Origin: Paragordius varius
Lineage: Eukaryota; Animalia; Nematomorpha
Length of the DNA: 64,000 nt
Assembly (NCBI GenBank): GCA_964247055.1
Contig: OZ176053.1
Coordinates: 2,356,001 to 2,420,000 of the forward strand
Reading direction: 5' to 3'
The first letter of the stretch is position 1. Each line of letters starts with the position of its first letter. Shown here piece by piece: positions 533 through 59,900 of the stretch. The notes beneath the pieces are model-generated. The model was not told the DNA's origin, searched no databases, and saw only the letters and a list, made by a program, of their open reading frames with translations. A program made the translations under genes and the position numbers.

Positions 533-3046
533 ATAGTTCTAATTCACCCTAAAATAAATTATATGTTTTTTAAGATAAAAAATTACTTATTTTATATTTT
601 TGATATAAAAAATTCTGATTAATATTAATATAACTGAAAAAACAATAAACTATGTCGTAAAACTATATTTCATATTAATGATGAGTTATATTAGCCCAAA
701 AACACATAATTTATTTTTAAGGTGAATTTGAATTGTTATAGGGTGATTTTGCAATGTAAATGGTATATATATATATATGCCCTAAAAAGATATTTTTTCT
801 TCCTATAATAGCAAATATTACACCGGACAATTTTAAATTAAGCTCTTATTAAAAATTAATTAACGATAATATAGCCATAATTAACACAATCTATGAATAT
901 TTCAAAGTTTATTATATATTTTGTATTCTAAATATATTTTCATGATTGCATGCATATTTTGAAGCATAAACATATTAATATATATGTGAATCTATCAATC
1001 TGATTTATAATTGTCACAAAAAATATTTTTTATAAATTTGTCTCACCTTTGGTTCGCATAACAGTGCAAAAGTTAAAAAGAGATTTGATGAAGGTCCATT
1101 AAAAACCCAAGATTTCTTTCCAATTAACTTGTATCCAATAATATTGGTCGAGTTTGTTGGGTCTCGTAAAATAGTGGCTTTAGTTTGTAGGTTAGCTAGA
1201 TCTAAATTTTTCCTACAAAATTTTATAAAAATATTTTCTTGTTTTTACATTTTTTAGGTAAAAAATGTTTTAGTGATATTATAAATAAACAAATAAATTA
1301 TTTTGGCTTATTTTTTTGGGTTTAAGAAAAAGGAATTGAGATGTAAATTGGACACTTGCTTTTAAACTTTAAATTTTTAATAATTTAAAATATTGAACAT
1401 TAAGGATAAATATAATAAGGCATAAGTTTCGTAATTCAAGTCCTACTGTAAAAATATGCAAAATATTTTTTTTGTATAAATTATCTGACCCAATCTTTCT
1501 ACAATGATTTATAGGATTTAAAATGTTAAATTATATTTTTTCAAATTTTTTTTGAAAAAATGAAATAATAAATAAATGAATTACAAATTTTCTTCATTGA
1601 GTGCGATAGCAGGGCAATATTTTCCATTGGCTATACCAGTTTGACATTCAGAACGAATCGTTTCATCTCTAATTCTGGACATTGTCTAGAATCAATCAAT
1701 TATATACACACCATTTAAAACTCAAATTCACCCTTGAACAATTCACCTTAAAAATAAATTATGAATTTTTGGGCTAATATAAGTTTACATTAATATGAAA
1801 TATATCTTTATAACGTAGTATTTTTTTAGTATTATTTTAATTTTAAACAAAATTTTATTTTTTAAAAAAATAAAAAAATATAGGTAATTATCTTAAAAAA
1901 TGCATAATTTATTTTAGCGTTATGAATTGTTTAAGGGTGACTTTGAACTTATGGTATAACAAAGGTTTTTAAATTAACTTTTTTTATATTATTTTATAAA
2001 TTTGGTATTTTTATCATCAAATTATCGGATTTTTAAATTTCAAAAACATTAAAAAGTTGAATTAATCTTTTAGGGTTAGCTATAGAAAAAAAGTTAAAGA
2101 AATAAATTGTTATAAAAAAAATTAAAGTGAGTCAACGGTTTAAAATCGTCAAAATTGACTAAAAAAGACTATATAACACTATCTATTGATTAAATAATAA
2201 ATGCATAATTGATATAAAGTTATCTCATTAATATTTGTAACAATATAAAAAAATGGCTAAATTTAGGCTCGAAATAGTGATAGTTAAGAAAATATTTAAA
2301 GGGATACAAAAAATATTTATTTATTTATAATATTAATACAAATTTCATAGCTGTTTGGCATATTCGCAGATATTTATAAATAATCATTTTTTTTTAGAAA
2401 TAATTAAGTTCGGCCATAAAAAAAGCATTTTTAGGGACATGAGACCCGTAGGCCGCAAGGCATATTAAAATCATTGTGTAATATTTGGGAACATAATTAA
2501 ATTTTTTGGATATTCGTATGCAATATAACTTACTTGTGTTGCCGAATGATAATTAGCTATAGTTGCCCCAAATGATGAATTTCGTGATATCTCTTCCATA
2601 ACTTGAGCAAAATTCGAAATGGGTAAATTACATCCACCTAAAAAATTGTCAAACTAATAAAACCATATTCAGCTTGAATAGGTAAACTTAAAATGGATGT
2701 TATGTTTTGATCATGGCCGTCCCATTCGTAAAATATGGATTGACCCTCTTCTATTTCAGGATATAGCAGGGAATCCTGATATATGAAATAAAAACTATAC
2801 TTGATCCAAATTCCCCTGAAATAAGATTTGTAAAAATGAATCTCGGTATGCCTTTTTCTTTTTTACGAAATATGGACGCTTAACATCCACTTCGGTATCA
2901 ATATATTTATATCTTAAAGGTATTTTTTCATCTGGATCTGGAATCAATTTGGGTATATAGTTAAATAGAGCAACAGATTTGCTAAAATATTTTTTTCTAA
3001 TGGCAAAACTCGTATTTGTAAATAAACCATGTGAAATTTTATTCAT
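239..3046 (-). CDS. ACAD9: Diverged acyl-CoA dehydrogenase 9-like protein (ACAD9/VLCAD family), 5' part; gene continues beyond window start
   Basis: Exons 3046-2801, 2775-2664, 2637-2534, 1685-1585, 1212-1047, 371-239, all GT-AG and phase-compatible (end of the last exon is uncertain). Spliced protein has a basic presequence-like N-terminus, then SFLQILFQGNLDQDSLLYPEI, LPIQAEYGGCNL..FAQVMEEIS, IANGKYCPAIALNE, YKLIGKKSWVFNG..NLFLTFA and KLGAFLID..KPYDKLGL, collinear with the recalled ACAD9 motifs VPEEYGGLG, LASGEHIAAFCLTE, LNGSKVWITNG and KPEDKLGI. Confidence 0.78.
478..528. repeat. (TA)n microsatellite
   Basis: Uninterrupted AT dinucleotide run directly abutting a MITE end. Confidence 0.95.
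529..763. mobile_element. ~235-bp hairpin MITE flanked by (TA)n, copy 1
   Basis: Inverted arms aattcaccctaaaataaattat / ataatttatttttaaggtgaatt with (TA)n on both sides. Related copies at 1711-1954 and 38179-38403, partial copy at ~51310-51430. Confidence 0.7.
1711..1954. mobile_element. Hairpin MITE, copy 2 (ACAD9 intron)
   Basis: ccatttaaaactcaaattcaccc ... gggtgactttgaacttatgg inverted ends in TA context; same family as 529-763. Confidence 0.65.
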
Positions 3047-11480: not shown

Positions 11481-12322
11481 ATGGTCCTAGATTTTGGACG
11501 CAAATATATTTTGTTTCGGGTGCTTTTGATTTTACAGTGAAATAATAAGTTACCACTTTTGTGATAATTGCTTCACATCAAAAAATAGCAAAAATGCGAT
11601 TATATGTTAAGTTGATGGAAACTGAAAGCTTCATTCCAAAAAAAAGTTGTTATATTAAATTTTGAAACAGGGCTAAAATGTTTAATTTTTTAAACTAAAC
11701 AGGAAAATGACAATAAAAATCGAATATTCCGAAAAATGGATATTTTTCCTATATTTAATTTATAGGTATTTTTCGTATACGAAGCATAGCAAAACGGTAT
11801 AAAAATTTAAGGATATTATAAATACGCTTTTCTGACCATTTCTATCGCCTGAAAAATTTGAATGAAGACACTCTATCCTCGAAATTTTTAAATATTAAAT
11901 GTCGTTTTCACAAAAATCTACTTAAATTTAATGACGAACAAACGCTTAACTTAATTTTTGAGGGCATGGAAATAGAAATTACGGAAATTCATGTAAACCA
12001 ATTTCCAACACGGGGAAAAGAAATCTAATCTCATCATGTAGAATCACATTCTTAAAAAACGCATAAGCCTGCATATTCTATTTAAACACTTTTTTATAAG
12101 TTCTGCAAGCAAACTTTACGGGCCGCATCATATATCAATCTTTAGGACTAGCTGCTTATTATATATATAAGTATGATTGTGCATATTCACATTATCTCCA
12201 AAATTAAAAATGGCAGTTTACAATTAACCATAAATTATGAAAGTAGTAATATATCTTAATAAATGAAATTAATAATGTCTGTTTGGGTAGATGTTTGATG
12301 TGCTAAATATAGATTAAATTAG

Positions 12323-12588
12323 TGTAGTAAATCAAGAAACCGTAAAACAATAAGATATATTGAATATAAAATGCAAAAACTAAACTACATACAGTTTGCG
12401 ATGTTTATATACTTTTTGTGAATACAATATTTACATGTTAAGCCAAGGTAAAATAACGTGTGCAAGTTAAATACAAAATTGATACAATAGTTTAACTCAT
12501 ATATAAAAGGTCATCAAAATGTATTCAAATCTAATATATAAATTGGTCTCGTCTAAGGTTAACTAACTTGATGTATTCTAATCTATCA
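12323..12588 (-). repeat. 3' LTR (266 bp)
   Basis: Direct repeat of 16386-16650; about five differences by eye. Confidence 0.95.
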
Positions 12589-12601
12589 TATCTCCTTATC
12601 C
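12589..12601 (-). other. Polypurine tract
   Basis: GGATAAGGAGATA immediately before the 3' LTR TG; overlaps the pol stop codon. Confidence 0.75.
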
Positions 12602-15600
12602 AAATCCGAGCCGATCTGGTGCTTTTCTTTCCCTAAGAGGATATATCCTTTCAGGTTCTTTCTCAGTTGTCTTTTCCGTTCTTATTTCAACCTGGGTGTC
12701 TTTCTCGTTTTCTTTTTCTTTGCTTGGTTCCTCCCCCACCTCCCGATTATTGGTTGTCATCTCTTCATCTGTTTGGTTTATCGTTACATTATCCTCCTCC
12801 TCAACGCCGTTCTCGACTCCTGTCGGCCGTAATTGATCCGCATGCTTGCGAAGTGTTCGATTTCCATCTTTAACCGTGTACGAGAGTACCCCTGTTCTCT
12901 CCAAAATTATACCTTTTCTCCACCCTGAATTGATTTCATTCTTTATGTACACTTCTTCGTCCGGTCTAAAAGTTTGATTAGGAATTATGTCGTCCTCTAA
13001 TTGTTGTGCGGGTGTTTCCCTAACCCAAGAGAAGGGGGTATTAATCTGTCTTTTCAGAAATAAATTATACGGGCACTCTTTTGTGGCGCTATGTACGGCG
13101 GAGCGATAACCCCATAACACTTGGTTTATTTTTTTGTCAGGAGTCAGCTTGGAATCCGTTAACGATTTATAGTTTGCTTTTAAGGTGTAAATGACCCGTT
13201 CCATTAGCCCATTTGTTCGTGGATGATAGGGGGCGCTAGTGACATGTTTGATGTTTGCTCGTTGCAAGGTATCTTTAATATCTTTCGATGCAAAATATGA
13301 TGCATTATCGGTAACTATCATTCGGGGAAACCCGTACCTTACACACCAAATTTCCAACCAATGTATTATGTTTGCAGAGTTAACAGTTCTTAGCAATTCG
13401 ACTTCAACCCATCTGGAGCTACTATCGATAGCTACTAACCAATACAACCCATCTATAGGACCGGCAATATCAAGATGTATCCTTTCCCAGATACTCGTAT
13501 TAAAATTCCATTTGTACGTTGGATAACTTTTTATGTTATTCCGGTTTAACTGACACCCCATACAAGATCTCACATAACTTTCAATATCTTGGTTTATACC
13601 TGGCCAATAAACCCTTGCCTTGGCAGACTCTTTCATTACATTAGCCCCCGAATGTCCAACATGCAAAAATTTTAACGTTTCATTTCGCAACGCCTTGGGT
13701 ATAAACAGACGATCGCCCCAATACAACAAACCATATGATTCTTGTATTTCGTTTCTTATACTCAATACCGAATTTAGAATTGGAGCTGACCAATCATTAT
13801 GATGTAGAGCCGATTTTAATGCCATCAAAAACTCATCCTGTAAAGTATTTTCTTTCATTCGCTGTACGCTTAAGTTGTCAGTTGTTAGAAAGTTGATTTG
13901 CCTGGGTTGCTCTTCAACTTCCTCAGTCTGTTCTTCATACGGTAGACGAGATAACCAATCCGCTAAATTTTCCGAACCATTAATATATTGTATAGTAAAA
14001 TTATAATCGGCTGTTCTGAGTATCCATCTTACTAATCTACTATTGTTAATATTACTTAGATCTCTCTTAAAACCAAACAACTTGATCAGGGGTTTATGAT
14101 CGGTTAGTAATACGAACTTTCTGCCATACACAAACATTTTAAATTTTTCTAGCGCATATAAAATTGCCCTTGCTTCTTTTTCAATTACCGAGAAATGTTG
14201 TTCTGCCTTCGCACATTTTCGAGACGCAAAAGCTATCGGCCGTTTTCCCTCACGTGTCATATGTGATAAAACTGCTCCGAATCCGTCATTAGATGCATCT
14301 GTTTCCAACACTAACGGAAGGTTCGGGTTAAACGGTATTAGACATAAGGCATTACTCACCAACAGTTTAGCTTTATCAAAAACCCTCTCTTCTTTTGTCG
14401 ACCAACATCATTTCTTAGAACCTGTAAGCGCATGTAAGTCCGCGATTGTAGCATGCAAAGACGGAATAAAACGAGCGTGAAAATTTAACATTCCCAAAAA
14501 AGACCGAAGTGATGTTTTATTGGTAGGTGTAGGACAATTCAAAATTGCTTTTACTTTTTCGTTATCAGGTTTAATTCCTTTGTCTGAAATTATATATCCT
14601 AAGTATGACACTGAGGAACGAGCTAATTGGATTTTATCCTTTTTTAATTTCAAACCCACAGCAGCTAATTTGTTCAACACTTTTTTCTAAATTATCCTTA
14701 TGCTCCATTACCGTTGTTCCACTAACAATTACATCATCTAAGTAAACCGCTGTACCTGGACAATCTTTTAATAACTCATCCATAATTTGTTGAAATATCG
14801 TGGGTGCACTAGATATTCCAAATGGCAGTCTCTTAAATCAAAAAAGGCCTATATGTGAACTAAACGTGAGTAAATGTTGATAATCTTGGTGTATCGGCAT
14901 TTGCCAGTAAGCTTCTTTTAGATCTAAGGTCGTAAAAACTTTTCCTTGCCCGATTTTAAACACTAACTGATCAAATGTTGGAATCAGATGATCTACAGGA
15001 ACCAGACTTGGGTTTAAAGTAACTCTAAAATCACCACATATGGGAATATCGTTATCATTCTTTTTAACTATTACCAATGGAGTTACCCAGTCAATTCGTG
15101 TTTGCGAGGGGTTTATGGACTCTATAATACCCAGACTTTCAAGCCTCTTTAATTTACTCTCCACCTTAGACTGAAGCGGAATAGGTACCCTCCTGGCCGC
15201 AAATCTTTTGGGGATACTCCCTTTTTTGAGAAACAACTTGATGGGTGATCCCTTGTAACACCCCATACCCTCACAAAACAAATCCTTAAATTTATTCAAT
15301 TCCACGTAATTAACATTTTTTACACATACAGGCTCTGGAAATCTGCATTCAAAACTTTTCATCCATGGTAACCCAAAAATGTTACCCCAATCATCCCTAG
15401 TAACCATACATTCCAACTGTTTGACCATACCATTCCATTTCACATCTACAACACATTGTCCCATCACCTCTACACCTTGCTGGTTGAACCCAACTATTGG
15501 ACCCGCGGGAGCTAAGGTCGGCCTCCCAATCTCCATCCACGTGCTCTTCCCAATCAATGATATTTGAGCTCCGGTATCGTACAACATCCTCACCCAATGG

Positions 15601-16345: not shown

Positions 16346-16372
16346 GCGCGAATGTAATGAGGTAAAAAAATT

Positions 16373-16383
16373 CGACCGCGCCA
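16373..16383 (-). other. Primer binding site (tRNA-Ser-like)
   Basis: TGGCGCGGTCG starts 2 nt after the 5' LTR; resembles Ser-type Gypsy PBS (TGGCGCAGTCG). The tRNA identity is an inference. Confidence 0.7.
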
Positions 16384-16385
16384 AA

Positions 16386-16650
16386 TGTAGTAAATCAAGA
16401 AACCGTAAAACAATAAGATTTATTGAGATAAAATACAAAAACTAAACTACATACAGTTTGCGATGTTTATATACTTTTTGTGAATACAATATTTACATGT
16501 TAAGCCAAGGTAAAATAACGTGTGCAGGTTAAATACAAAATTGATACAATAGTTTAACTCATATATAAAAGGTCATCAAAATGTATTCAAATCTAATATA
16601 TAAATTGGTCTCGTCTAAGGTTAACTAACTTGATGTATTCTAATCTATCA
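16386..16650 (-). repeat. 5' LTR (265 bp)
   Basis: Direct repeat of 12323-12588. Confidence 0.95.
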
Positions 16651-17762: not shown

Positions 17763-19141
17763 ATGGCATATGATTCATCTTATAGAACACTGTGTTGCAA
17801 TGTCAAAACTGCATCCTTTGGATTCTTTATCTATTCTTTGGTACTTTTATAATCCATCCAATTTTTTTTATATATTTAATAATTATACATGTCAACATAG
17901 TTTTAATTTAATTTTATCATTGTAATACTTGCTTATCTCTTAAAAGCTATAAAAAATTTTATGATGATTTAAATAGATAGCAAATGCAATAGCTTTTGTA
18001 GTTTTAGTATGGGCTTCCATTGCATTTTCACCCAGTGATAAAGTAACAACTCTAACACCAGTAGTGTCAACTATAAGCACAGATGATTTTGTCATTTTTG
18101 GTGACAAAAATGAAAGCGAATGGGATAATATAAACTACATTAATACCACTTCATGGAAGGGATTTATTAAGAACGGACTTACTTCAGGTATAATTTGAAC
18201 ATAAATTTTCAGCAAAATGGAATACTTTTATGGATTTTTTTTTGAATCTTTTGTAGCAAAATTCTATTTTAATTGGTTATTACCTTAATTTCAAACATTT
18301 TTAATTTATTTAATCAACCACCATAACATTTGTTGTTAGATGCGCAAAATTGAATTTATAAATAATTGGTTATTATCTAAATTTTTTTTATATATTTTTA
18401 TTAATATCTATAGTTGTTTTAACTTTTTTGTACGATATGCAAAAATTTTTTAAGGCATTGGAAAATATGTGCATAACTTTACAGTCCAATATTAATTATA
18501 ATTATAATCCATTATATTATAAATCTAGTGCTCGTAAGTATGGCTTGTATGACAGCAACCGGAATCATTACTTCTCTCATTGGAATATACGCTATTTTTC
18601 GAGTAATTTTTTCTATCATTTTACTTGGCTTTTAATGGTGAAAATGCATAATAATATTCTTACTAAGTGGAAAACAAAATAATTTTGAGACAAGGTCTCA
18701 CACGTCATTTTGCTAAGAGAATATGGAAAGCTTTTACAAATTTTTAAGGCAGAAAATGTTTTATATATGCTAAAATTTAGAAAAAGTAAATCTCAATAGT
18801 TGATAAACTATGCTTTTAAACCTGAAGCGTAGTGTAGCGTGAAAAATAATTTGCTTCTAACAAAACCCCATATTTTCAATATTAAGGGCAAATTACCAGA
18901 TAAATATTTACATCAAGATAATAAAAATATTTAAGGGCTTACTTAAGCTGATAAGTTTATAAAATCAACATGCATATTTATCAATTTTTCTATGTGTTTT
19001 TCAATTTTTTTATAGCAAAAACCAAACTTGCTAATACCTCATTTATGTATGATGGGAATTAATACCGTTATGGCAATATCGGGTTTCATGAACCCACTCT
19101 TTCTTTTACAGGTATGTCTGTACAATTGAATGTTATAAATG

Positions 19142-19173
<32 letters not shown>

Positions 19174-19523
19174 CTATATATATCTTTCATATTAATTTTA
19201 TTTACGCCTTGTCTATAGGGAACAGGCACGAAATTTGAAGCGTTTGGAACATACGTCAGTTTTGTCTTTGGCATGATTATACAGGTAATATATTTGCTAC
19301 GTAAATTTTACGACTTCATAATTTTGTGAAAAAATAATTTTTTTAGCTGTTTGCATCAAAATAAAATTTAATAAATTTTAATGTTTAAAAACAAGTGTAT
19401 TTTTGGTTTAGTAGTAATTTAAATTTCCATATATCCTTCTAGATTTACTTTATCAGTGTGGTCGCTAGATGCTTCAAATATTTCAAGGATTTAGAATTCA
19501 ATAAACAATCCTCAAATATATAA
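17763..19523 (+). CDS. Four-transmembrane LAPTM4/Mtp-like (DUF7027-type) membrane protein, 201 aa
   Basis: Six GT-AG exons 17763-17840, 17977-18187, 18529-18602, 19016-19111, 19219-19284, 19443-19523 join in frame. Motifs LCCNVKTAS, IGIYAIFRQKPNLLIPHL and IYFISVVARCFKYF; four hydrophobic segments; N-glycosylation sequons NES and NTT in loop 1. Confidence 0.8.
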
Positions 19524-33373: not shown

Positions 33374-33922
33374 ATGGATCAAGTCATACAAGGTTTTCGA
33401 AACGCCGCTCAAAAGATTGGTGGAGCAGGCTCGGATATAACACAGGGAATATCAGGCGGAGCTACTGCAACCTATGATGCCGCTGCTCAATCCGTTGATC
33501 AAGCAAAACAAGAAGTCAAAAACAAAGTATGTATACTTATTACATAAATTTTATAATTTAATTTTTTACCCCATTTTCATTTTTTACTTATCCAGGTTGT
33601 GGCTGTAGGTGAAGGTGCTCAACACATTGTAGGCGATGCGGTTGGTCAAGTTGAACAAGGATTCACACAAGTTGGACAAGGGGCCCAAAATTTGGCTCAT
33701 GGGGTCGCTCGCGGAGCAACGAATGCCTATACCCATGTTCAGCAAGGCGTTAAACAAAAAGTTGACGTTGTTGCTGAAAATGTTAATGCTGTCGCATCTA
33801 ATGCCAAACATGGCGTCGAAGAGGTCGGTCTGCATGCTGGCGATAAAGTTAAGGGAGGCACGGAAGGAATAATTAATGTACTTCGGAGAATTAGTGATAT
33901 CATCCCACATCATAAATCTTAA
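33374..33922 (+). CDS. Second LEA-like repeat protein, 159 aa, no targeting peptide, two exons
   Basis: Exon 1 33374-33526 (MDQVIQGFRNAA...EVKNK), 69-nt GTATGT..CCAG phase-0 intron, exon 2 33596-33922. G/A/V/Q-rich with no Cys or Trp. Shares QGF.NAA, KHGVEEVG and GDKVK-like motifs with the 22038-23012 protein. Confidence 0.82.
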
Positions 33923-35435: not shown

Positions 35436-37229
35436 CTATAAATTTTGATAGTACTCAACTAGAATTTTCCAAGCTTCCGGTTCCATAAAACCATCAGGCG
35501 GTTGAGTGCCTGTCCGTGCAAATTGTCGCATTTTAGTTCCACTGATAAATTCAAAATCACCGGCTCGTTTTGGTTCAAAGAAGGCCATACATTGATTAAC
35601 TTTATCGTAGGCGGCTACTTTGAATGGAATGATTTCAACATTGGTAAGTCCTGGGGCCATTTGTAAAACCTTTGTGATGATTTAATAAGTAATAAACATT
35701 TATTATGATAAATGGCGAAAACGTATCAATTGCAAAATTATTACATTTTAACAAAAATTATATTTACGGAGCAATTAAAAAATGGCGAATTTGTGGGAGA
35801 GTATGGCTAATTTTATCAGTATTTTATATTTTTTCGTTTAAATAAAATTTTAATGGATGAATTATTTTTTTACAATCTTTTACAGTTCCCGGGAAAAAAC
35901 GCTTAAATATACTTTTAAAATAATTTTACACATTTGGATCTTTTAAGTTTTTAAAATTCAAAAAAGACTTTATCCATAAATTAAACATGTTAATCACTGT
36001 TTAGTAGTTTTATCATTTGAAATAATTTTTTTAACAAAAAAAATTTCTCTCAAAAACCTTTTGTCCGTATGTGGGATCATATATATCTTTTCCAGTTTCT
36101 GGATGACACATACCAGCTGGATCTCGGCCCACAATATAAAAATTGACTCCTGCAGAGGTGCGTGCTTTAGCGTGCCATTGGACCTAAAATTGGCAGAAAT
36201 ATAAAATAAAAATTGTTGCAAAACATAGTTAAGTTAAATGTCATAAAAATTGGAACTAATTTATATACATAAAACTTTAATACCTAAATGATAAATATAA
36301 AAGGGACAACAGTATTTTTTTCAAATCTGGCTGGATGTTTTAATTATAACTCGTCGTTTTAGCTACCGAAATAGGGATTAAACTTTTTAATTATCCTTAA
36401 TTTTCTTTTTTTGCCCAATTTTGATTTTCCCTTAATATTTCAAAGATCACCAAATAAAAATTTTTGCGGCAAATAAATTCGCTGGTCATAAGCTATATCA
36501 TGAAAAAATTTTTTTTATTAAATATATTGCACACAGTGTACTATCAATAAGATATTTGAATTGTAATTAAATCGGTAAGTTCAAGGTTTTAAAAAAGTAT
36601 GCCTGTAATTTTTAAGTTTTATGTATAATTTTAATTTTGGGGCAAAATATGGGTTTTTTTTAAATCTAAATATATTACGTTTTTTAACCTTTTTCGCCTT
36701 TATAAACTTTACAATTTATTAGTCATCATATATATAAAATAATGAGATATAAATATTTAAAGAGGATATCTTATTGTTAAAAAATGTCATAAAACCTTTG
36801 AAATTATATGTAGAAAAATACTTACAGTAAAAACTGAAATTATACGGACAAAAGGTTAAAATATAAAGACAAATATTAATTTGCAAAAGACAACCATACT
36901 TTTTATATCTTAATTTTTCTCTATATAACTTATTTAGTTACAATTGCAGGATGTATAATTGAATTTTTACTAATATACATATCAATTATCTATTTTGCGA
37001 TTTCAAATAATGAGTTATATTGAAATAAATCATATTTAAAGAGTGTGGTTGTCTTTTAGAAAAAAAACATTTGTCCATATATTTTTAGGTTTTGTCCGTA
37101 TAATTTTAATTTTTACTGTAATTATTCAAATAATTAAAATATTTCCTCGTTGAAAATATGTATGTTAGTTTACTTAAGCGCACCATAAAAAAATATCATA
37201 AAACAATATTTTTATCAATTCAACTAATT

Positions 37230-37261
<32 letters not shown>

Positions 37262-37573
37262 ACATATAGCAAAATAGACAAAAAGTATGATTAAATCTAA
37301 AAAGAATTCTCTATTTCAAGTACAATTATGATTCAAAATTAAAGAAATATATATGGGTACTTCAGTGGGACCGGCATACATCATAGGGGAAGGGAATATG
37401 GCTAAAACTGTCGTTTTTGGATCAATCACTTGTGAGTTAAGAACCGCTAAATGCTGTTTAATTCGGTAATGTAAATTCACATCATCATCTTTGGTCCAAC
37501 CACCTTAATAAATCATCATAAACAAAACTAAATTTGTTTTTAAATTCATTTGATTCATTTTTATTTTTTAAAA

Positions 37574-37616
<43 letters not shown>

Positions 37617-38144
37617 GAATTTTTCTTAACTAAATTTCTCTTTTGTAACAAATTAATGATACAATAAACATCTATGATTAAAACTCGTGTTTAAAAACTA
37701 AATTTGGTTTAATTTAAATAAATATTGTGAGGGAAATAAATCTGACCATAATTTTGAGTTAAAATTTGTTCAATTTAAGGCGGTTTTTTACGGACCATAT
37801 AAAAATTAATTAATTAACTAAATTTAGTTTGGACAAAGGACAACACAATAATACCATTTCTTTTTATCAAAGGTAGATTTAAAAACTGTAAAACACAAAA
37901 TTTTTTAGTATATACAATAAAAAAATCTAATATCATATACTTATAAAACAAGCACACAATTAATTTACGATTATAGATATAGGGTGTTAAATTGTTTTTA
38001 AATCTTGAACATAAATAACCATTAAAGCAAATTTTTCAATAATACGTAAAAATTCATAATCAAACTGTTGAATTATTAATTTTTATGAGATAATCTTCAC
38101 ACAATTTAAACTTATTTTCTCTTCAAAACACTACCAATATAAAT

Positions 38145-38178
<34 letters not shown>

Positions 38179-41100
38179 CTATTTACAATTCAAATTCACC
38201 CTAAAAACAATCATGTGTTTTCGGGATAATATAGGTCATTAATATGAAATATATTTTTACGACATATAATTTATTATTTTTTCAGATTTATACAATGTTA
38301 AACAGAATTTCATTATAAAATAAAATTAATTTTTAACCTTAAAAAGCATAAATTATTTTAGGGTGAATTTGAATTGTAAATGGTAAATTTGAATTGTAAA
38401 TGGTATATATATATTAGAAAAATACCCAAGGGATGGAGAAGTAAAATAGGGTTAGTGTACCCATTTAGTTTTAATTGCTTTTTCGTTTCATTCATTAACA
38501 AAGCGTGTCCGTTGTGAATCGGGTTTCGGAGTTGAAATGCAAATATGGCATCAGCCTTAAAACGCACAGTAAAAAATATTTTTTTTTAATTTTATAAAGA
38601 GTTAATTTAATTTAAAATTGGAACAATGGACATTCTTTGAGTTTTTATACTTAGTAAAATAAACTTTAATTATTAATTCATTTACTAATTTTTTGAATAT
38701 AAAAATTCATATGAAACTTAAACTTAAATTTTATTTAAAACAGTATTTTACAAATTTAATGCTTAAAATGTATATTACATATAATATATAAATATATATT
38801 TGAAAAAATTTTTAAACGGCTAAATTTTTATAAAAAAATATTTTTATATTAAAATTTTGCAAGGTAAAGAGACCTCCTATAAATCATTGCATGTAAATAC
38901 CTAGTACATATGTATTTTTTCGCATATATAAAAAACATTTTTTTCTTAAATTCTTAAGGTAAAAACACTTAAACAATATAATATATGTCCCGTGGCTCAT
39001 TTTAAACAAAAAAAGGTTTATTTGCTTTAATTGTATACATATATATCTATTATATAATTCATTGGGAGCATTGTACGCAAAAACATCCATTTACACAGAC
39101 AAAAACTATATTATAAAATAAAATACAAAAATTTGGATAATATCCAAAAAATGAGTTGATAAAAAATACGGAGTATATGCTAAAAAATTTTTGTCAATGT
39201 GCCATGTTAAACAAAAACCATCAAAACAACAGCTCTAAACAAATACTGAAATAAATTCACTAAATGAAGAAAAAAAGCAGAGTTAAAAAACGACAGATGC
39301 TTCTCGCATTTTAACAATTTTTTGTGGCAAAATTTATTATATGGTGGATAAACTTAATCAGAGAATAAAAATAATTTAATTCAAAGATAAAAATATACAA
39401 AACAGAAATATTTTTGACATGGATAGTGTTAAAATCAAAAATAAAAAAAAAACTAAATTAAAAGCAACCTTCATTTCTTTAAATTTTTGTTTAAGTTCCT
39501 TGGGTGTAAGTCTATACTGATCTAATCCATCGTCCCATTTAATGCGATCAAAAACTTCCAATTCGCCACCAATTAACCAATCTCCACTCTCATAAATCAT
39601 CTATCAAATAAAAAAGGTTAAAAAAAGTTTAAACGTAATACTAAAATGGATATTGATTAAAACTGTGAAAGTTTAGCAATAAAGTAATTAAAAAACAATT
39701 TCGGCCACATCTAGAATGGGTAAACTTTGTCAAACGTAAAAACGTTTTAGGTTCCAATTCTGTTTTGACCGCTTTTCGGTTCCTGGTTTGAATTGAAATA
39801 AAATTTAAGGATTACGTCATTCAATTTAAGCCATAAAGACTAAAATTTCAATCAATTTTTTCCATTAAAATTACAGGAAAAACATAATTTGATCCCCTAA
39901 ATAAGCAAAAAAGTGATTCAATTCTTAAAAATTTAATTTCCATAAAAATCAAAATTATAAAGGAAACTCACTTTGATATATGGGTGTTGTTGACATGTTA
40001 TACCAAATTGTTTACCACACCTGACCTCTTTGGGGTGGGCAAAAAATTCGGGAGAATCCAAAACAGCTATAATTTTACCCTGATAAGTTAATGTAATGCC
40101 ATTTTTATCCGTTAATTGGTGTTGTAATTCATCTTTCCGCTCAGTGCTCACAGGTAAAACAATGGGTATGGATTGATTTATAACGCAATCTAAGATTTAT
40201 ATGTATATATAAAATTAATTGCATCTTAAAGGTTTTCGGATATTCTAGTATATTATGTTTCCCTCCGGATAATACATTATTATTAGCTATATTGGCCTAT
40301 AAATTGCTTAATAAAAAATGTGATTAATTTTATTTTCCCATTTTGCTTCATTAACTAACTAAAACGAATTCTAAAAAGGAATATAATTGACAACAACCCT
40401 TTTAATTAATTTTCATTTTCGATTCTCTAATGTAATATAAAAATTGTTGCAAAAAAATAAAATTATTAATAATTAAAAATATGGCGCATGATTAAAAATT
40501 TGGAATAAATGTATGAAATATACCATCTAGCAGTGATCCAAAAAAGAGACATTGTAAAAATTGTTTTTCCCTCATAAATCCGGACAAAGGATGAGCCCAT
40601 CCTTCAGAAAGTACTTGAACCCATTGTAAATCCAACTAATTTATAAGATATAACATGAAATTAAAAAAAAAACGAAATCAAAAGGACAAACCGTTCAACT
40701 ATAAAAAAGTCATTATTATATTATTATTAAGAAATGGCTACTGATCATTTACAATATAAACCCATAATTTTGAATTACATAATTTTGTATATTAATTTAC
40801 CCATAACGATGAGTTATGTTAAACTAAATCAAGATTATTATAAAAAGTTAATGGCTAAAAAGGTGTTTGTCTTTTAGTTTTGTCCATATAACGTCAAATT
40901 TTTACTTTAGTTATTTCAAGGCTTGGTAACAATTTGGCCATATCCATTTTTTGGGCATATACCTCTGGATCAACAAACAACTCTTTTATGTAATGTGATG
41001 CCGATTTAGGGATAATATTCTATATAATATATGAAAAAAAATTAAGAAGATGTTTTAAATTATTAGTTTATGGATGTGGAATATGGATCTAAAGATTTTC

Positions 41101-41971
41101 TATACGTTTAAACGCTAAATATAATTTTCGATATGTATATTATTTTTACAGGTTCGATTTATTTATACAGCGAAAATACTTTTACACACTTTTTCAATAG
41201 GGTATATTGTATCATTTGAATAAATTTCATAAAAACATAAACATTACATACTTAATTTTTAAATAAGCATTAATAAAATGATTTTACACCAGATGTAATT
41301 ACCTCCTCGACCAACATTTCAATCATGAGATTAAGACTATCTCGCACAGTTTCCTCGCCGGCTTTTATGGTTAAATGAGGATATAGTGGCTTTTCATAAG
41401 CCGAATCAATGCCCGTGAAACCTTTCAAATGACCAGCCCGAGCTTTTTTGTACAAGCCTTTAACGTCTCGTTTCTCACAAATTTCTAGCGGTGTATCGAC
41501 AAAGCATTCAAAGAAGGCCAAGTTTTGTTCTTCAAAAATTTTTCTGGCATAGGCACGATCCTAATATTTATGGTTACAATATTGTGTTTACCTTTTCAAA
41601 AGGGCTAATGAAAGCCGTGATAACAATTATCCCACCATCAGCAAAAAGTTTGGAAACTTCTGAAATTCTACGGATGTTTTCTTCTCTATCCTGATTGGAA
41701 AAACCCAAATCTTTGTTTAAACCTTGTCTAATGTTATCACCGTCAAGGACATAGGCTGAATAACCCTTTGAACATAAATACTCTTCCAAAGCAAATGCCA
41801 ACGTTGATTTACCAGAACCGGAATAACCTATAATATAAATTTAGTGGATAAACCTGTCAGCCATATACAACATCCACGAAATTTTCCTCTAAGTCCCATA
41901 ATTTGTCCACGTTTATCCCGATCAACATTGTGATCATGTCCATAGAGGGCAAGACCTTTGGTATTATCATC
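35436..41971 (-). CDS. PAPSS: Bifunctional PAPS synthase (APS kinase plus ATP sulfurylase); start exon not located
   Basis: Exons 41971-41854, 41827-41592, 41560-41303, 41019-40906, 40635-40524, 40189-39972, 39600-39469, 38555-38426, 37503-37361, 36183-36058, 35669-35436 give 606 aa plus stop. Motifs: P-loop [61 protein letters not shown]. Confidence 0.97.
36385..36538. mobile_element. Solo right-arm fragment of the 25985-27255 foldback family in a PAPSS intron
   Basis: atccttaatttt..ttgccc..gctggtcataagctat..ttgcacacagtg|TA matches ~27100-27257. Confidence 0.75.
38179..38403. mobile_element. Hairpin MITE in (TA)n, copy 3 (PAPSS intron)
   Basis: ctatttacaattcaaattcaccc ... gggtgaatttgaattgtaaatgg, with (TA)n on both sides and a duplicated terminal segment. 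Confidence 0.7.
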
Positions 41972-44009
41972 CTACACATTATAATGATAAAAAACCATAA
42001 GAGCTTTATATTTCATAGCACAATACGTATGTGTGTTAGGTGAAAAAAATAAAATGTTTAAAGGTATTAATTACAAGTAAAACTGGGTATATTTATATTG
42101 TGAAACCAGAGAGCGCTAGTTAAATTTCCACACGTGTTTACTTAAGCAAAAATGCGATATCAGTAGTTTTTTTACCATAGCCAAATTTTTTTGTTTACAT
42201 TTGGGTGGGGTTAGTAAATAAAACATTGACGCAAATATAATGTTTGTTAATCGTTTCCGTACAATTTTTTAATCACATATCTTTTATAACTACGCAAAAC
42301 ACCATTTTTATATCGTTATCTTTTATTATTTAGGCAAGTATAGTGATGTAATTAGATGTAAAATTTAATTGCATTTTTTTATTTACTTCAGTTATTTATC
42401 TCTAATATTAAAACGGTTATAGATTGACTTAAATTACATATTTAGATAGTCAAAAATGTGTCAGTATACCGCCACCGGTAAATTATATCAAGTAATGCTG
42501 TAGTTGAAGTCCGTGCTCCCAAATATTTTCTGTGACTATGATTGATTTTAACAATAAGTAGCAAATTTTTTACATACATGTATGTGTAAAATGCATGAAA
42601 ATATTCTGTGGCATAATATTTGTACATACAATCGCGTATTATGCTTATAATAAGTCTTGTTTTCGGTTTAAATATACAACTCTCTTACAATGGATAAACG
42701 GTACATGATTAAAAGATATACTACCTCAACTTTTGGCTAAAACAAAACCATATTTTTACAAAATTAACATTTTTAGATGTGGTCTCCGAAATCTCAAATT
42801 TTTGGCCTCCACCAATTTAATTAACTTTAAAGCAAAAAACCTGAAATTTCACTATAATTTTAGTAAAATTAATGTTTCTTTAACAAATTTTCTGAATAAG
42901 TCTACATAATTGAGAATCACCTAAAAATATTGTTTTATTGTTTTTGCTATTTATGTTGGAAATCTATAAAAATATTTATTAATTGCCATATGGCAGCCCG
43001 TCGGATTTTTCGAGTCGCACAAACCAATGTAGGACACCCCTAGTTTAAAGTATTATTCTCACCCTTTACTGAACAAATTGTGGTTATAAATTAAAGTTTT
43101 GAATCAACACATGAATATTAAAAATTAAATATAAATATTTTACCAATTTATATCTATCAGCGTAACACTTAATTACCTCTTAGGCTAATTATCTACCATA
43201 GACGATTTGAATTTTATTTAGGATATGGAAACAAATTTATAAATAGGAAATTGGCTTTTTAGACGCATTAAAAAAACTTAACCTCAAAGTATGGCTACAT
43301 TCGAATGAATCGCTTAAAATAGTGGCATATAAATAGCTTATATTTAAAATCCGATAATTGATATTAAAATTATCTGTTTATTGCGAATTATCTAAATCTT
43401 AGACTTAACAATAACCTTTATATCAAATATATAAAATCAAGTTCGTAATGATAAACCTATTCCAGTCAAAAGCATATTTTTTTTAAAAAAAGCAACAAAA
43501 GCAACAATTTTTTAACCAAAAACAACATTTTTTCCAAGCAAACACAACATTTTTTAACCAAACGTAATATTTTTCATTCAAACGGAACGATAAATGTTGC
43601 GTTTGGTTGAAAAATGTCGCGTTTGATTAAAAATATGTTGCTTTTTACCGAAAAATGACATATTTAGTTAAAACATATTTATATTTCAATAAATTTTTAT
43701 TTATTTACATTATATTTATATAAAATCTTTCATTTGAAACAAATTATAATTGAACACACGATAAAAAGAATATGCAAGTTTCGAAACTCAAAATAAGTTC
43801 CGTTTTCAATAATTTTAAAAAATGTATATGTGTGTGTATGTAAAATCTATTCAAAATATGATTTTCCAATCGGTCAAAATGTAGCTGTTCTTTCGATTAA
43901 AAGTATTTTTACTATTTTTATATATTTCCATTGATTCCCTAATAATTCTATTCTTGTGATGGTTAATAAGGGATACGATGTATATCATTAAAATTAATTG
44001 AGTGCCCAT

Positions 44010-46445: not shown

Positions 46446-49400
46446 ATGTTTTCCCCTGTTGTTACAAACATTTGCTTCTTTATAACGCTTGATATCTTTT
46501 TTACGATTCTTGGGATCCTAAAGGGACAGACCGAATTTATAGGTGATATAATTATTTTTAATTTTTACTAAATTTTGAATAAAATATTTTTGATTGCTTT
46601 AGATTTTAACACCAACACATTGATTCAATTTGAATCGCTAACATGTCAAAATGAAATCGCACATCTAGTTTGTCCATTTAACACCAGTATTCTTATTACC
46701 TTAGCACTGTATGGGGTCCCTTCTGGCCGTAGAATCAAAAAAAGTTATATAAGTTTTCCATATCATCCCAAAGATATATTTCAAAGATCTAAAAAAAGTG
46801 AATGTCCCATAACCCAGTCTCAACTTACAAAAAATAAAAATAGGGCTGGGAAAAACGCACCTAGAAGTCTAATAAGTCGCGGTCACCAATCAAGGTTTTG
46901 CCTTTCAACTTCAACTCTACAAGTATATCACTATATTCAAATTTCTTTATTTAATATTTCGATTTAAACAAATATGAAATCGATTTTCAAATAGTTTAGG
47001 TTACTTGTATGATAAAATCTTCATCACCTTTTTATAAAATTTAATAGTTAACTTTTTATCCATTGATTCAAATTGATAGGATGATAAAGACAACAAATAT
47101 GATTTATTTAATAAAAAACCAATATATTGAAATAAAATGTTTACTTTATAGAGTTCTAACAGTTTACACTTCATAGTTTAGCGGTTATGTTTTCTGACTT
47201 CATGTGGTTTAATAACCTTATCAAAAATTAACAGTTAAATATTTTAAAAATTTCACTTTAACACATTATGGTATTTTCGAAAATTTCAATAACTCCTTCA
47301 ACTATACGAATCAATTTCATACATTTTATCTTTCAAAAAATTTTGTCGCTGGTTTTTTCAATTTTTTCGAAAAAAATGTTTCTGGCTCAGTTCTATAGAA
47401 TTTTCCCGGTCATACCATACTTTTTAATCGAATTTTCCAATTTTTATTCCACCATCTCGAATCTTAAAGCCGATTGTTTAATGTCTAAATTACACGAAAG
47501 TATATAGATAAAAAATTGTTTTATTCTATTTTTCTTTAAATTATATATGATTCTTATAAATTAGTTAGGAAAAATGATTTAAATTTTTATAAGAAGAAAA
47601 TAATGTATAATTTTTTTGTTTGGAAACTGAATTTCAAAAGTCGTTTTTAAAAATTTTATTTGGTTTTAAATTAAAAATTAAATCATGCGGCAAAACCTAA
47701 AAATACAATGACAAATAATTTTTTTCCCATACTTGATTTTTCTATATAAATTATAAATTACAGTTATATACTTTAACTGTGTTATAATCATTTTCAAGTT
47801 TGAAAAGAATTTGTCTTTATGCTTTTGTGTTTTGTCCTTATAAATTCGATTTTTACTAAAACTATTCAAAAAGAATACTTTTCGGTTAAAATCAGTAAAC
47901 ATACCGCATCCATTAGACCAATCGAAAAAAAAAATTAAATTTCAACAGTTTATAAAAATTCGATATATATATATATATTCTAATAAGTCATATTTTTTAG
48001 AATGTTATTAATGTGTGCCAAGATAAACGGGAATGCTTTATCCCAGCTAGAGACGATATTTTTGGGAATCCTTGTTCGGACACGCAAAATCCCAAATACT
48101 TAGCCATTAAATTTAAATGTCAGCCAAGTAAGATTAATTTTGCTATATAGAAATAATGTAATTGCATTTCACCCTTTATATCCATATATAATATGTATAT
48201 TATAGAAACATTTTCTGACATCATCGTGTGTGAAGACAATACGAAAGCATTGGAATGTACAAATTCGAATCCCCATAGCATTATGATTTTCCTGGCATCC
48301 TTTGGCATGTATTATTTGAATAACAAGGAACTTCGAATGCCTAAAAGCAGTGTCTGCTCACTGTTAACCTTTAACTTTGATAATGGTTTAAATTATTAAC
48401 TTATATTTGATTTCATTTTTATTGCTTTTTTCTTTTTATATATTACAGCTTCATTGTATATGCGTAAAAATTATGGGTTAGTTTTTCAACCCCACAGCTT
48501 AAAGTATTAGTAAAATATCGTTTTTAATAACTTACTTCTCATTCAGAAAAAAATATATAATTTTAACAGTTTTGACTTCTAGAGACCCAAATTTAGATAG
48601 CTCCGAAACACGATTAATACAAACAGCTGATATTAAAATTAATGAATATAAAAATAAATTTAGTTAATTAATTTGAAAGCTTTTTAAATTTTATTAATTT
48701 TTTAACCACAATATACATTTATCCTGTTGTACGCGATCTAAAAAAAATAAAGAATGGCGGCGAAAAGTTTGAGATGAGTATTTTTTTTATATTTTATATA
48801 TTTAAAAAAAATTTGTACCATGCGTTTATGAGGCTAAAGAAAGCATGCTTTCACATTTGGCCCAATGGTAAAATTATTTTTAAGGTATTTAAATTTTTGG
48901 TAGCATAAAACTACCCCACAAGGCGAGGAAGTGTTAATATTTAGCCCATTATTGACAACTTGCATGCACTTTAAAATTTATTGTAAACAACGTGCATAAA
49001 AATGCATCAATAGTTGTCATTAAATATTGCAGGTTAACATTAATATTTAAAGCATGAATCTTCAACATGCGGTTGTGAGATTTTATGACCTGAAGTAATT
49101 TGGATAATTATCAAATACGATAAAATTATTCTATTTTGTCCTATCTTTTAAGTCTACTAAAATATCTCATAATAACACTATAATTTTGGCCCTACGAGCC
49201 ATTTAAATATTACAAAAAAGCGTTAAAAATACCATTTCTTCGATTTCCACGTTCAACAATAGCTCCAAATGCTATATCTGGCATCATTTAATGAAAAATC
49301 TTCTTCATACTGTAGTTTGTGATAGTTTACAACCGACAGATCTGGTCCGTAAAAACTGTTTTGGCAAAGATTCTTGCCTCCTTTCAGCTCAAAAAGATTT

Positions 49401-50956
49401 ATTCGAATCCCTCTGCCCTAAATATCATTCCTCTACTGCGATCAGTTACATACATGTCGTATATACTTGTGGTAATATTTCTTTTTCGCTATATATTTAA
49501 ATTATTATCCCCAATAACGAAATAATTTTGTTTGCGTTTATATTTACAATGAAAGTTCCAAATTCAATTCTACTGCCATTGTTTGTGAGACCACGAAGCT
49601 TGATCACAAAATCAGAAACAGTAGGAGCTGATTCTATTACCCATGCAAGTGAAATAGTTTCGAAAAGTCCCATTTTACCTTCACATGGTATATTTTGAAC
49701 CCTACTTTGTTATATGTGCTTCGTATTTTTATATTAGTATCAGATATTTGTTCAATCCTTTTTTAATCAGTTTTTTATTTATTTCCAAAGAATGGAATAT
49801 ATAACTTAAAATAATTTTTATATTATTAGATATGACCAGTATGTCAAACATACCAATTACCAATTCAACAAGTCGGGTAAAAACACCTAATATTTTTACC
49901 CAATCCTCCAAAGCGGATATGGAAAAATCGCAAGCAAAAAACGAGTCTGTGATATTCCAAGGCCCAAAAGTCATATCTATGCAAGATCAAGAAGTTAAAA
50001 TAGAAAATTTCTATTTTGACACGTATAAAGGGACCAAAAGTTTGCATTTAAATTATAATTGTATTATAATATTGAAATAAATGTGTAAATTTACTTATAA
50101 ATATAATTCTAAAGGTATGGCAACGCATTTCTTACTTATCTTCATATTCATAATCTGTTTTGGACTTTTTATCCTATTGATCTATTTGATATTACACATT
50201 TTTCATTGCCAAACGTGGCATGGATTAACTAAACGATCATCATCCACCCCAGATTCAATTAGGAAATGCTGTTTTGGTGTACCATCATTCACAGACATTT
50301 TGGGCAACTTTAATCCCATAAAAAGTGCAAACAACTCCAAGTATCAAACATTATCCAATACATCAACAAAATCTTCGAATAGCGAAAGCAGTTTCAATAA
50401 TATTGGGCACAAAAATTGTAAAGACCCCTGTCAATATAATTATCAGCATACTCATGCTTTAGTTAACTCTTCTTTCACATCGCAATCTACCCTTGAAGCT
50501 ACGAGCTATAAAAATAAAAATAATTACAATCCCTGCGTATTAAACACATCAAATGTATATGACGTTTACCAAAAAGATGCATTTGTCATCAAAAATAGTA
50601 GTAGCGTTGATGATGGACGAAATGAACAATTTACAATTAATACTGGGACAAATTCATTCATGAATAAATTGTGGTCACGTTTAACATCCAAAGTCCGTGG
50701 TAACAATCAAAATCAAAATACTAATGTAAATATCCAAGAAAACAGTTTTATCGACCAAGGGCCAATTACAGCTCATGTTAATAGGAACAAAAATATTCTG
50801 TCAACCCAATCAGTAAGTTATAATAAATGGGATCATAATTATGATAGTTTTTATCGGTGTAGACCGTATTTGCTTCTCCAACAAATACAGAATCAACAGA
50901 GGCAAAGGCAAATGCAGGGAGCTCATCACCCACAAAATTTTGATGCACATATCTAA
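46446..50956 (+). CDS. EVA1C: EVA-1/EVA1C-like single-pass receptor with two SUEL (Gal_lectin) domains, ~687 aa
   Basis: Exons 46446-46542, 46603-46922, 48001-48127, 48206-48385, 49316-49471, 49556-49687, 49830-50039, 50115-50956. Hydrophobic leader; SUEL1 TCQNE..LVCP..ALYG..CLS..LQ..CQDKREC..FGNPC..KYLAIKFKCQP; SUEL2 VCED..LEC..ASFG..CFGKDSC..LCP..YIHVVYTCVP; TM FLLIFIFIICFGLFILLIYLIL; long low-complexity tail. Confidence 0.88.
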
Positions 50957-54949: not shown

Positions 54950-55061
54950 TAGTATATATATAAGTAAAATAGAGTTTTTCTTAATTAAATATAATAACGA
55001 TTTTATCTTATGGTAAGGGATGGTTATGTTGTGGTACAATTCCATACAAAAATTTGTTTTA

Positions 55062-56586: not shown

Positions 56587-56895
56587 TTATTGTAATAATA
56601 TTCGTACCCTCTGCGATTTTTTTGGTATGCAAAGATTGCAATAATAGTATCTGATATAAAATGACTCGTACAAAGCCGAAAATAATATTGAGATTAATGA
56701 TACATAAATTGAAAAAAGGTCTTTCATGGTAATCTGTGCTTGTCGCAAATATAACAGTAACATTATATTTTGGAACCAGTTTTTAATAAAATCCTCCCAA
56801 GTTTTTTTATAAATAAGTAATATAAATACATCTCTTATTCCCCATATGTAAAAAGTTTTTGTCAGCTCTAAAGCGAATGTATTGATAAAAAGCAT
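56587..56895 (-). CDS. Candidate first exon of an unidentified hydrophobic (possibly MFS/SLC46-like) protein
   Basis: Open for over 100 codons in very AT-rich DNA; ATG at 56895; hydrophobic stretches; IYKKTWED weakly resembles SLC46 VYRRIWEE; possible donor AGG|GTACGA near 56606. Downstream exons not resolved. Confidence 0.35.
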   Translation of the reverse strand: MLFINTFALELTKTFYIWGIRDVFILLIYKKTWEDFIKNWFQNIMLLLYLRQAQITMKDLFSIYVSLISILFSALYESFYIRYYYCNLCIPKKSQRVRILLQ

Positions 56896-56919
56896 TTTGG
56901 TAGATTTGAAAATAGTATT

Positions 56920-59900
56920 ATGGTTCAACAAGATATGCGTGACATATATTTTAATTGGTTTGATTATTTACTTAAACCAACTGAAATTGATTTATACCTT
57001 AAAAGCCAATCAAGTTAAAAGTTTATCATATTTTAGTCCATTCCATAAAAATTATATTTAATCAAGCCCTTAAACTTATTGTAATTAAGATACCTGAAAA
57101 GGAGCCAAATTTTATTCCAAGTATATTTTAAATAATGTTAGGTGATTTTGAGAGAAATGACGCAAAATATTTAAATTATTACGTGTTAATCAACAAAATC
57201 CTATGCATTCGAAATTGGGATATAAAATATCTAATCAATAAGTTATTACTCTTATTATTTAAGTGTTTCACCCATATTTATATACTCGTTAGTTGACTTT
57301 CTTACATTATACTCTGACAAAAATTTATTTGATTTACCAAAGATAAATCAGATATCGGAACCAACTTCCTTATTTTTTGCCATATATTGTAATGTTTTGT
57401 AAGTTTTTTCCCATGATAATGTTTATTAGATTCATACAATTGATAATTCAAGATAGCTTCCCAAAGAAAGATGATCGAATATATTCATTTCCAATGTAAT
57501 ATAATTTTTTTTTAAAAAAATTACTTTTTAATCTTATTTTTACTCCTTAGCCCTGAACAGTTGGATCAAACCTTACATGCAAACCTAAACAAAAAATTTA
57601 TTGATCAAGTATGCTTTTATTGCATAATAATTTATGACAAATAGGTTTTTAAACAAAAACATTTAACCAAAAATGTGCTAATGTTTAAGTTAAGAAACCA
57701 ATCTCTAGTTTTTTATATATCAATTTTATCAATATAATTTAGCTAATTTTACGCAAAGAATGTATTGTGACATGGTTGGAAAATGCATTGGATTACCTTT
57801 CCACCTCCATTACATCAAATGACAGTGATAAACAAATTATTATATCACGTCCGGATATTGGATATTTCAAAATTTTTGACACTTATATTTACAAGAATTT
57901 TGTCGCTTGCCGTCATGATAAATCGGAACTATATAATTTTACTTCAGTTATAACTGATTCAAATTTTGTTACAAGTTTGGACCTTGCGACAATTATTCAA
58001 AATATTAATGTCATCCTAGCAAAATACTATTTTTATGCTAATAATCTTGACAAATGCAAAGCATATTTGCTACAAATCAAGGAAAATAACTTTGTTACTG
58101 ATCTAAAGGAAAATAAAAAGAAGGTGTGATCATTAAATTATTGCACTTTATACCAGGGGGTATCCAACACAAAGGCTACGCCCACCGTATTTTGGAATCA
58201 AAACTTCCGACGGGCCTCATTTACAAAATATATGGGAATTAACAAAAAATTTAAGATTACACTAAAGACCCTGTAAAAATAACTGTTATATTTTACAATG
58301 GTTGTTAGTTTATCTCCAAAATTCGTAATGACTTATTTAGAAAATTTGTTGAAAAAAAATGAATTTTACCTAGATTTTGTAATATTTTTTATTTAAAATT
58401 TATTGCTGGCGGCAAAAATGTTTTGGTAGTCCGAATGTTGGCCACCCCTGCCCTATACTAAAAATTTAAACATTATTTTGAGAGTTTTTAAAATTTTATT
58501 TGCCCTCAGGAATATGCACTTTATTGGATAAATTTTATTTTTTACTGATTGTTTTACCATAATTAAGTTTTTTTAAAAAAAATAATTTTTATTTTAAATA
58601 ATATGATATATATTGAAAAATATTTTTTATGCCGATTTTAACAAAAAATTTTGACATTTAATATAAAATTTATTATTTGTTATTACTAACTGTAAAATTA
58701 CTGTAAAATTATTAATTTTTTTTATTATATTATTGAATGCTTTATTAGAGATATATTTTATATTATTTAATATTAAAATGAATAGGAAAATGATACAGTT
58801 TTTGGGTTTCCGCTAAATTCGATTGACTCGTCAGAATTTTTAGGGTATTGTTTAGCTTGTGGCATCAACGATATAGAATATAAACCTTCATCAAAATTTT
58901 TACTGAATCACTCACCATTATACAGCAATAATATAAATTTTGCGACACTTACGTCCCAAGTATAAAATATATAAATAGTTTTTAAATTTAATTTAATTTT
59001 TTAAGCTTTTTTGAAATATGTATTTTATAAAATAATAATAGGAATGGGTTGACATACTGGAAAAAGATTTGTTATTTAGCATTGGAAATAACGATAATGA
59101 AACCAAATTTAATTTGGAAACTTATAATTATGGATTGTCGATTTGTTTGGATGAAAATGTTACCACAAATTCCACCGTATTGCCGCAAGATGAGTAGTAT
59201 TTAATTTTTTATTTGTCCAAAACTTTTATAATCCATTTATTTTATTGGTCAATATATATTAATTTCTAATTTTTTTATATAACACTTTACGAACTTATGG
59301 GGTCATCTTATATCCTAGAGCTTTTTAAAATTTGTATTCTCAAAAAATATTTATTAAGTCGAATTTAAAATGTTTGCTCTAAAAAATAAAATCAGTTGTA
59401 TATTCTCATCTTAAACTTTTTCACCGCCATTTTTTTTTAATTTTAATCGGTATTACAAGGCAAGTAAATGCATAAATAGACTAAATGCATATTATGATCA
59501 TTAATCTTAATAAGTTTTCAGCTTATATTTTACCAGCAAAAACTTTCTTGATTTTAAAATCAGCTGTATTTTACAATGTGTTTTTTTTGTCCGAATTTCA
59601 GACTCTGGAAGTTAAAGCTGTAAAAAAATTTAAGCTTTTTTTCATCTATGTTTAATATTTAAATTTTAACTAAAATAACTTTCAAAACAGTAGTCTTTTT
59701 ACACGATTGAGCTTTGGGATATATAAATACCTCAAAATGCCATCGCAGACAAAAAAGTGAAAAGGTCATAAAGTGTTAATATATATGAAATGTCCAGTAT
59801 ATTTATATATATATATATATATATATTAAAGTTTTAATTTGGAAATACTTAAATAATATATATTATGTAGTTTTATTATAATGCATAGATTTTCCCCACT

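Follow-up and report, generated by a model that had tools for sequence, protein, structure and literature searches.

A 64,000-nucleotide stretch of the genome of the horsehair worm Paragordius varius (assembly GCA_964247055.1, contig OZ176053.1, positions 2,356,001 to 2,420,000; hereafter the window) contains nine segments of 21-31 nucleotides (nt) that are probably U2-type ancestral introns shrunk to this size, and that would make up a minority class close to the starts of housekeeping genes (within ~500 nt), in a genome with downstream introns that are long and frequently repeat-bearing. The original prediction had listed eight GT-AG segments of 21-31 nt as introns. All eight are present at exactly the lengths given, and a ninth (41995-41972, 24 nt, with a GTT donor), which lies in a PAPS synthase (PAPSS) gene, had been overlooked. 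The claim that these are real introns of the spliceosomal type is supported by their GT..AG ends (nine of nine), by restoration of the reading frame and by the ancestral positions of those in the PAPSS gene.

Six intron-bearing genes were modelled in the window: ACAD9-like (partial), LAPTM-like, LEA-like, PAPSS, EVA1C-like and INTS8-like (partial). Database searches of the gene models were performed exon by exon. The 42 mapped introns have a median length of 214 nt, and the nine shortest, referred to here as micro-introns, measure 21, 22, 23, 24, 25, 26, 26, 31 and 31 nt. A size gap separates them from the remainder, with no mapped intron between 31 and 55 nt. The guanine-cytosine (GC) content of the micro-intron interiors is 14.5%, versus 30-39% for the coding DNA of the same genes. 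Both micro-introns whose length is a multiple of three (21 and 24 nt) contain an in-frame stop. The window as a whole has a GC content of ~27%, a value that matches the 26.93% of Gordionus without being diagnostic.

The firmest case is the PAPSS gene, which carries three of the micro-introns.

35436..42016, minus strand: complete PAPS synthase gene, 613 amino acids, intact, 11 introns
41972..41995, minus strand: PAPSS intron 1, 24 nt, phase 0, GTT donor, in-frame stop at the acceptor
41828..41853, minus strand: PAPSS intron 2, 26 nt, phase 1, GTT donor, in the P-loop
41561..41591, minus strand: PAPSS intron 3, 31 nt, phase 0

The PAPSS product is matched by Pfam exon by exon. It is 47% identical to P0151 over nearly the full length and 60% identical to a bat protein, and it does not lie on a long branch. 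Matches to its exons reach at most 69% identity at near-full coverage, and a metagenome scan returned distant APS kinases only. In order, the introns of this gene measure 24, 26, 31, 283, 270, 334, 371, 913, 922, 1177 and 388 nt. If the micro-intron segments are kept, each produces a frame shift or an in-frame stop. At intron 2 the upstream exon matches human PAPSS1 (1x6v) as far as residue 58, and the downstream exon resumes the match at its second residue with residue 61, so that the splice supplies exactly the two residues in between. The Pfam APS_kinase match covers 10-86 before the intron 3 segment and 88-152 after it. No ATG is available ahead of the conserved motif unless intron 1 is removed, which gives an upstream exon of 7 codons. 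Intron 1 appears a little less certain than introns 2 and 3 because its donor was taken as the nearest solution.

Comparison with outgroup intron positions, put forward in the original prediction as a means of distinguishing shrinkage from gain, was performed for PAPSS and pointed to shrinkage. At the site of intron 2 (window codon 47, phase 1) the dragonfly Ladona fulva has an intron of 1548 nt and an insect-like locus one of 107 nt. At the site of intron 3 (codon 126, phase 0) the Ladona fulva intron measures 400 nt, and an acceptor also precedes codon 126 in L001. Within one codon of intron 1 the dragonfly has an acceptor in phase 0, and the Ladona fulva intron at codon 212, phase 0, shares both codon and phase with the site of PAPSS intron 4. 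Because the dragonfly introns coincide with them in codon and phase (for intron 1, within one codon), PAPSS introns 1-3 are, as judged from these positions, evidently ancestral introns that shrank. Recent gain of the introner type was rejected for them, as the positions are ancestral and not novel. The PAPSS exon at 41303-41560 (minus strand) is without the dragonfly's intron at codon 172, phase 1, an intron loss adjoining the shrunken introns.

The other six micro-introns belong to the ACAD9-like and INTS8-like genes.

237..3046, minus strand: 5' part of the ACAD9-like gene, with later introns of 848, 372 and 675 nt
2776..2800, minus strand: ACAD9-like intron 1, 25 nt, phase 0, GTA donor; if retained, a stop follows 3 nt after the donor
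2638..2663, minus strand: ACAD9-like intron 2, 26 nt, phase 1, GTT donor
56920..63958, plus strand: INTS8-like gene, open for 757 codons through 13 introns and running towards the window end, with later introns of 55-1710 nt
57014..57036, plus strand: INTS8-like intron 1, 23 nt, phase 1, GTT donor
57121..57141, plus strand: INTS8-like intron 2, 21 nt, phase 1, containing an in-frame stop
57242..57263, plus strand: INTS8-like intron 3, 22 nt, phase 2, GTT donor
57399..57429, plus strand: INTS8-like intron 4, 31 nt, phase 2, GTAAGT donor

These six appear well supported by frame restoration, a null test and presumed alignments, although less directly than the micro-introns of PAPSS. Retaining any of the segments leads to a stop 1-52 nt past the donor. 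Their removal gives an open frame only, whereas the PAPSS frame was also checked against PDB and Pfam. The ACAD9-like gene is assigned to the acyl-CoA dehydrogenase family because of matches to a downstream exon (1047-1211), which include Pfam Acyl-CoA_dh_M (E=0.0035) and 10 PDB entries, all of them weak and all acyl-CoA dehydrogenases, ACAD9 included. Its two micro-introns presumably stand at the sites of intron 1 of human ACAD9 and of the phase-1 intron after EEY-G, placements for which a paper search gave no confirmation. At 1585-1685 (minus strand) the gene diverges strongly at what is presumably the FAD-binding LTEP motif, reading LNEE, and the product is possibly a non-catalytic complex I assembly factor.

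The name INTS8 reflects a presumed resemblance, confirmed by no tool, to the motifs WF-x-LL, W-D-x-x-x-L and Q-x-SFP-x-K of the human INTS8 N-terminus. Of the possible solutions, the start with four micro-introns takes out the fewest bases. An open chain of this type was obtained by chance at 0 of 1708 non-coding ATGs of the window and in 0 of 20,000 composition-matched simulations. An open reading frame of 114 codons (56587-56931, minus strand), with no convincing Pfam match, is arranged head-to-head with the INTS8-like gene, the two ATGs being 25 nt apart, and may be a chance frame or a divergent gene.

Analysis of the splice sites bore out the GTT donors claimed for four of the eight listed introns. 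With PAPSS intron 1 the count becomes 5 of 9, an enrichment over the 6 of 33 in the other introns (Fisher p=0.04). A G at +5 is rare in both classes (micro-introns 1 of 9, other introns 9 of 33), and micro-intron acceptors are mostly TAG. An A occurs at -9 and at -7 in six of the nine micro-introns, a count with n=9 and an AT-rich background. A U12 type was rejected, as a GTATCC or ATATCC donor is present in none of the nine. Across the 42 donors, the exon ends in A 16 times, in G 21 times and in T five times. No small nuclear RNA or splicing-factor genes were found in the window, and an Rfam search was blank, so that the window supplies no evidence for the adapted spliceosome supposed in the original prediction.

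Positions within genes were measured from the ATG and not from the transcription start. The micro-introns were claimed to sit among the first mapped introns, and they are in fact the first two, three or four introns of their three genes, 21-479 nt from the ATG, while every later intron of these genes measures 55-1710 nt. The joint probability that all nine occupy the first places in this manner is ~8e-7, a value calculated post hoc. In each of the three genes the change from micro-introns to long introns falls ~480-510 nt past the ATG, and among the long introns length also increases with position (rho 0.41, p=0.02). The remaining three genes of the window serve as controls.

17763..19523, plus strand: LAPTM-like gene, introns of 136, 341, 413, 107 and 158 nt; named without Pfam confirmation
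33375..33922, plus strand: LEA-like gene, one intron of 69 nt
46447..50956, plus strand: EVA1C-like gene, introns of 60, 1078, 78, 900, 84, 142 and 75 nt; two SUEL lectin matches and a weak FAM176 match

As had been stated, the EVA1C-like, LAPTM-like and LEA genes are free of micro-introns, their minima being 60, 107 and 69 nt, respectively. The stated coexistence with transposable-element-filled introns of up to 1.7 kb is correct for seven long introns (the longest, 1710 nt, is 60% repeat and six others are 28-58% repeat), but many long introns contain zero repeat detectable within the window. The window also contains a Ty3/Gypsy retrotransposon (~12320-16650, minus strand) with terminal repeats of ~265 bp and a pol in pieces. 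It appears to be a recent insertion because its terminal repeats are near-identical. Best protein matches of its Pol are 31-39% identical and spread across unrelated animals. A second LEA-like protein is encoded at 22038-23012 (minus strand), facing apart from the one at 33375-33922 (plus strand), and both are repeat proteins. The gene at 22038-23012 is intronless, and its product is His-rich with a presequence-like start and an empty homologue search.

Comparison with known systems places the size class and the 5' clustering in different groups. A survey of 51 animal genomes (September 2026) found sub-30-nt introns only in myxobolids and one dicyemid, where short introns are dominant, and left the recognition of such introns open (PMC13644364). 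The U2-type splicing of 22-27-nt animal introns is published for myxobolids, which splice them with conserved U2 and U2AF (PMC13644364). Like the myxobolids Henneguya, Thelohanellus and Myxobolus, the window genes have 21-31-nt GT-AG introns at ancestral positions with the donor cut to GT plus A or T, a weak A-rich patch before the AG, and short introns that adjoin short introns (PMC13644364). Unlike in the myxobolids, where they are the majority class with a median of 22-27 nt, they constitute 9 of 42 introns here and are confined to gene starts, a confinement that the main text of the myxobolid paper does not report (PMC13644364).

Dicyemids, as described in PMC6543705 (citing Ogino et al. 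2010), resemble the window genes in intron size (median 27 nt, two thirds below 30 nt) and in conserved exon-intron structure. Their miniaturisation is genome-wide, and the mixture seen here of tiny 5' introns and kilobase, repeat-bearing 3' introns is not reported for them. Flukes (Opisthorchis felineus and other flatworms) share a minority short class in adjacent clusters, enriched at the 5' end and standing beside kilobase introns, and the 5' clustering was attributed to intron definition (PMC6530080). In contrast, fluke introns have modes of 37 and 90 nt, and their microintron splice sites are closer to consensus while GTT donors are enriched here (PMC6530080). Among ciliates, Stentor (15-16 nt, PMC9505925) and Paramecium (~25 nt, PMC5014332) likewise have AU-rich tiny introns that need a sharply looped lariat, but these organisms are unicellular and all their introns are tiny. 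Altered branching factors were proposed for them. The precedents named in the original prediction (ciliates, nucleomorphs and dicyemids) thus lacked the myxobolids (PMC13644364) and the 5' microintrons of flukes (PMC6530080). A literature search, mostly without subscription papers, returned no report of a sub-30-nt size together with 5' confinement, nor of nematomorph micro-introns. The word 'intron' is absent from two nematomorph genome papers and one Chordodes paper. Size class and 5' clustering are each already known separately, and we found no report, within the literature searched, of their combination, which is apparently new.

Several observations weigh against the interpretation of the nine segments as shrunken introns confined to gene starts. 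All nine were called from DNA sequence alone, and the sample is six genes. The ACAD9-like N-terminal exons, searched singly, gave no match in any tool. The INTS8-like exons, searched singly by Pfam, PDB, Atlas and single-sequence fold, returned no name, and codon-usage scoring failed to separate them from non-coding DNA. INTS8-like intron 3 has an equally open 28-nt alternative (57265-57292), intron 4 contains ATGs in frame with the next exon, and a relaxed scan yields one chance three-intron chain of 441 nt. The branch-point signal comes from nine AT-rich sequences. In four DNA sequencing runs 77-89% of the PAPSS words are present, a share that must include intron DNA; this speaks for the interpretation, but these runs may be the source of the assembly. 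Of the runs that hold the PAPSS words, none is recorded as RNA. In addition, 14 introns lie at most 500 nt from the ATG, and five of these are 60-1078 nt long; the five belong exclusively to the LAPTM-like, LEA-like and EVA1C-like genes. The prediction that promoter-proximal introns are kept tiny consequently stands as 5' confinement in three genes and fails as a universal rule.

Some of these observations would fit other explanations. Assembly insertions or pseudogene lesions could mimic introns where calls come from DNA and where the best-matching DNA runs may be the assembly's own source. We consider this scarcely credible and rejected an assembly artefact, since all nine segments have GT..AG ends, three of them stand at ancestral intron sites and the genes are otherwise intact. 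Among the other runs, X5, which carries another organism label, contains 0.35 of the words of 39300-42100, near the exon fraction of 0.43, and is a candidate RNA run or relative. RNA-labelled runs under the same species label contain almost no words of 39300-42100, and the label may cover different species. A partial mis-call of the INTS8-like four, with a start at an ATG inside the 31-nt segment or use of the 28-nt junction and with fewer than nine real micro-introns, is invited by those alternatives, by the chance chains of the relaxed scan and by the lack of tool-confirmed homology for exons 1-4. It is nevertheless unlikely, as the strict chain never arose by chance, both solutions for intron 3 are below 30 nt and the model contains presumed motifs of the human INTS8 N-terminus. 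The genome might also be that of a myxobolid myxozoan or a dicyemid, in which the small size is already published. The AT-rich DNA and the reduced splice motifs (GTa; AG) are as reported there, and searches with PAPSS exons, a LEA-like protein and the Gypsy Pol returned no close relative, but a median of 214 nt in this one window is far from the median below 30 nt that marks miniaturisation in those groups (22-27 nt in myxobolids, 27 nt in Dicyema), and the PAPSS protein, still 60% identical to that of a bat, is not on a long branch. We therefore regard this identity as quite improbable, and a myxobolid as the leading guess was rejected on median intron length.

Most probably the segments are ordinary U2-type introns that deletion wore down to a floor near 21 nt. 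An essentially conventional spliceosome would then define the micro-introns across their own length (intron definition) from minimal signals, namely a GTA or GTT donor and a T-rich tract followed by a TAG acceptor. A probable branch A ~7-9 nt before the intron end would give a lariat loop of ~13-20 nt. Only the cap-proximal zone would keep introns of floor length, as cap-assisted U1 recruitment and slow early transcription may tolerate weak, tightly spaced sites there. Repeat insertions would be purged near promoters, while downstream introns would lengthen by insertion. On this scheme the horsehair worm could be a third animal lineage that splices 21-31-nt introns, doing so only in a cap-proximal zone of ~500 nt and with transcript position setting the minimum intron length, a proposal that we advance tentatively.

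The same introns may instead reflect a purely mutational pattern, in which deletion bias and the exclusion of repeats near promoters act under an ordinary spliceosome and position has no effect on splicing. This account carries substantial, if minority, weight. The gradual rise of length with position among the long introns, the location of repeats in long downstream introns and the retention of U2 and U2AF in myxobolids (PMC13644364) favor it. It does not readily explain why none of the many repeat-free downstream introns is below 55 nt, nor the size gap from 31 to 55 nt, nor a change that falls ~480-510 nt past the ATG in each of the three genes. Deletion to a floor, with cap-proximal assistance deciding where that floor can be reached, is accordingly a speculative choice that we hold to be roughly evenly balanced against the purely mutational account.

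Gene finders with a minimum intron above 20 nt would truncate or frameshift the N-termini of such genes. If borne out, a further lineage whose repeat-rich genome combines tiny and kilobase introns in one transcript would separate the minimal intron from genome compaction. Tiny and kilobase introns sorted by distance from the start would also provide an internal control for an effect of cap proximity on minimum length. If the cap-proximal zone is real, one and the same spliceosome would splice introns smaller than the floor usual in animals when they are near the cap, and would act in the normal manner downstream.

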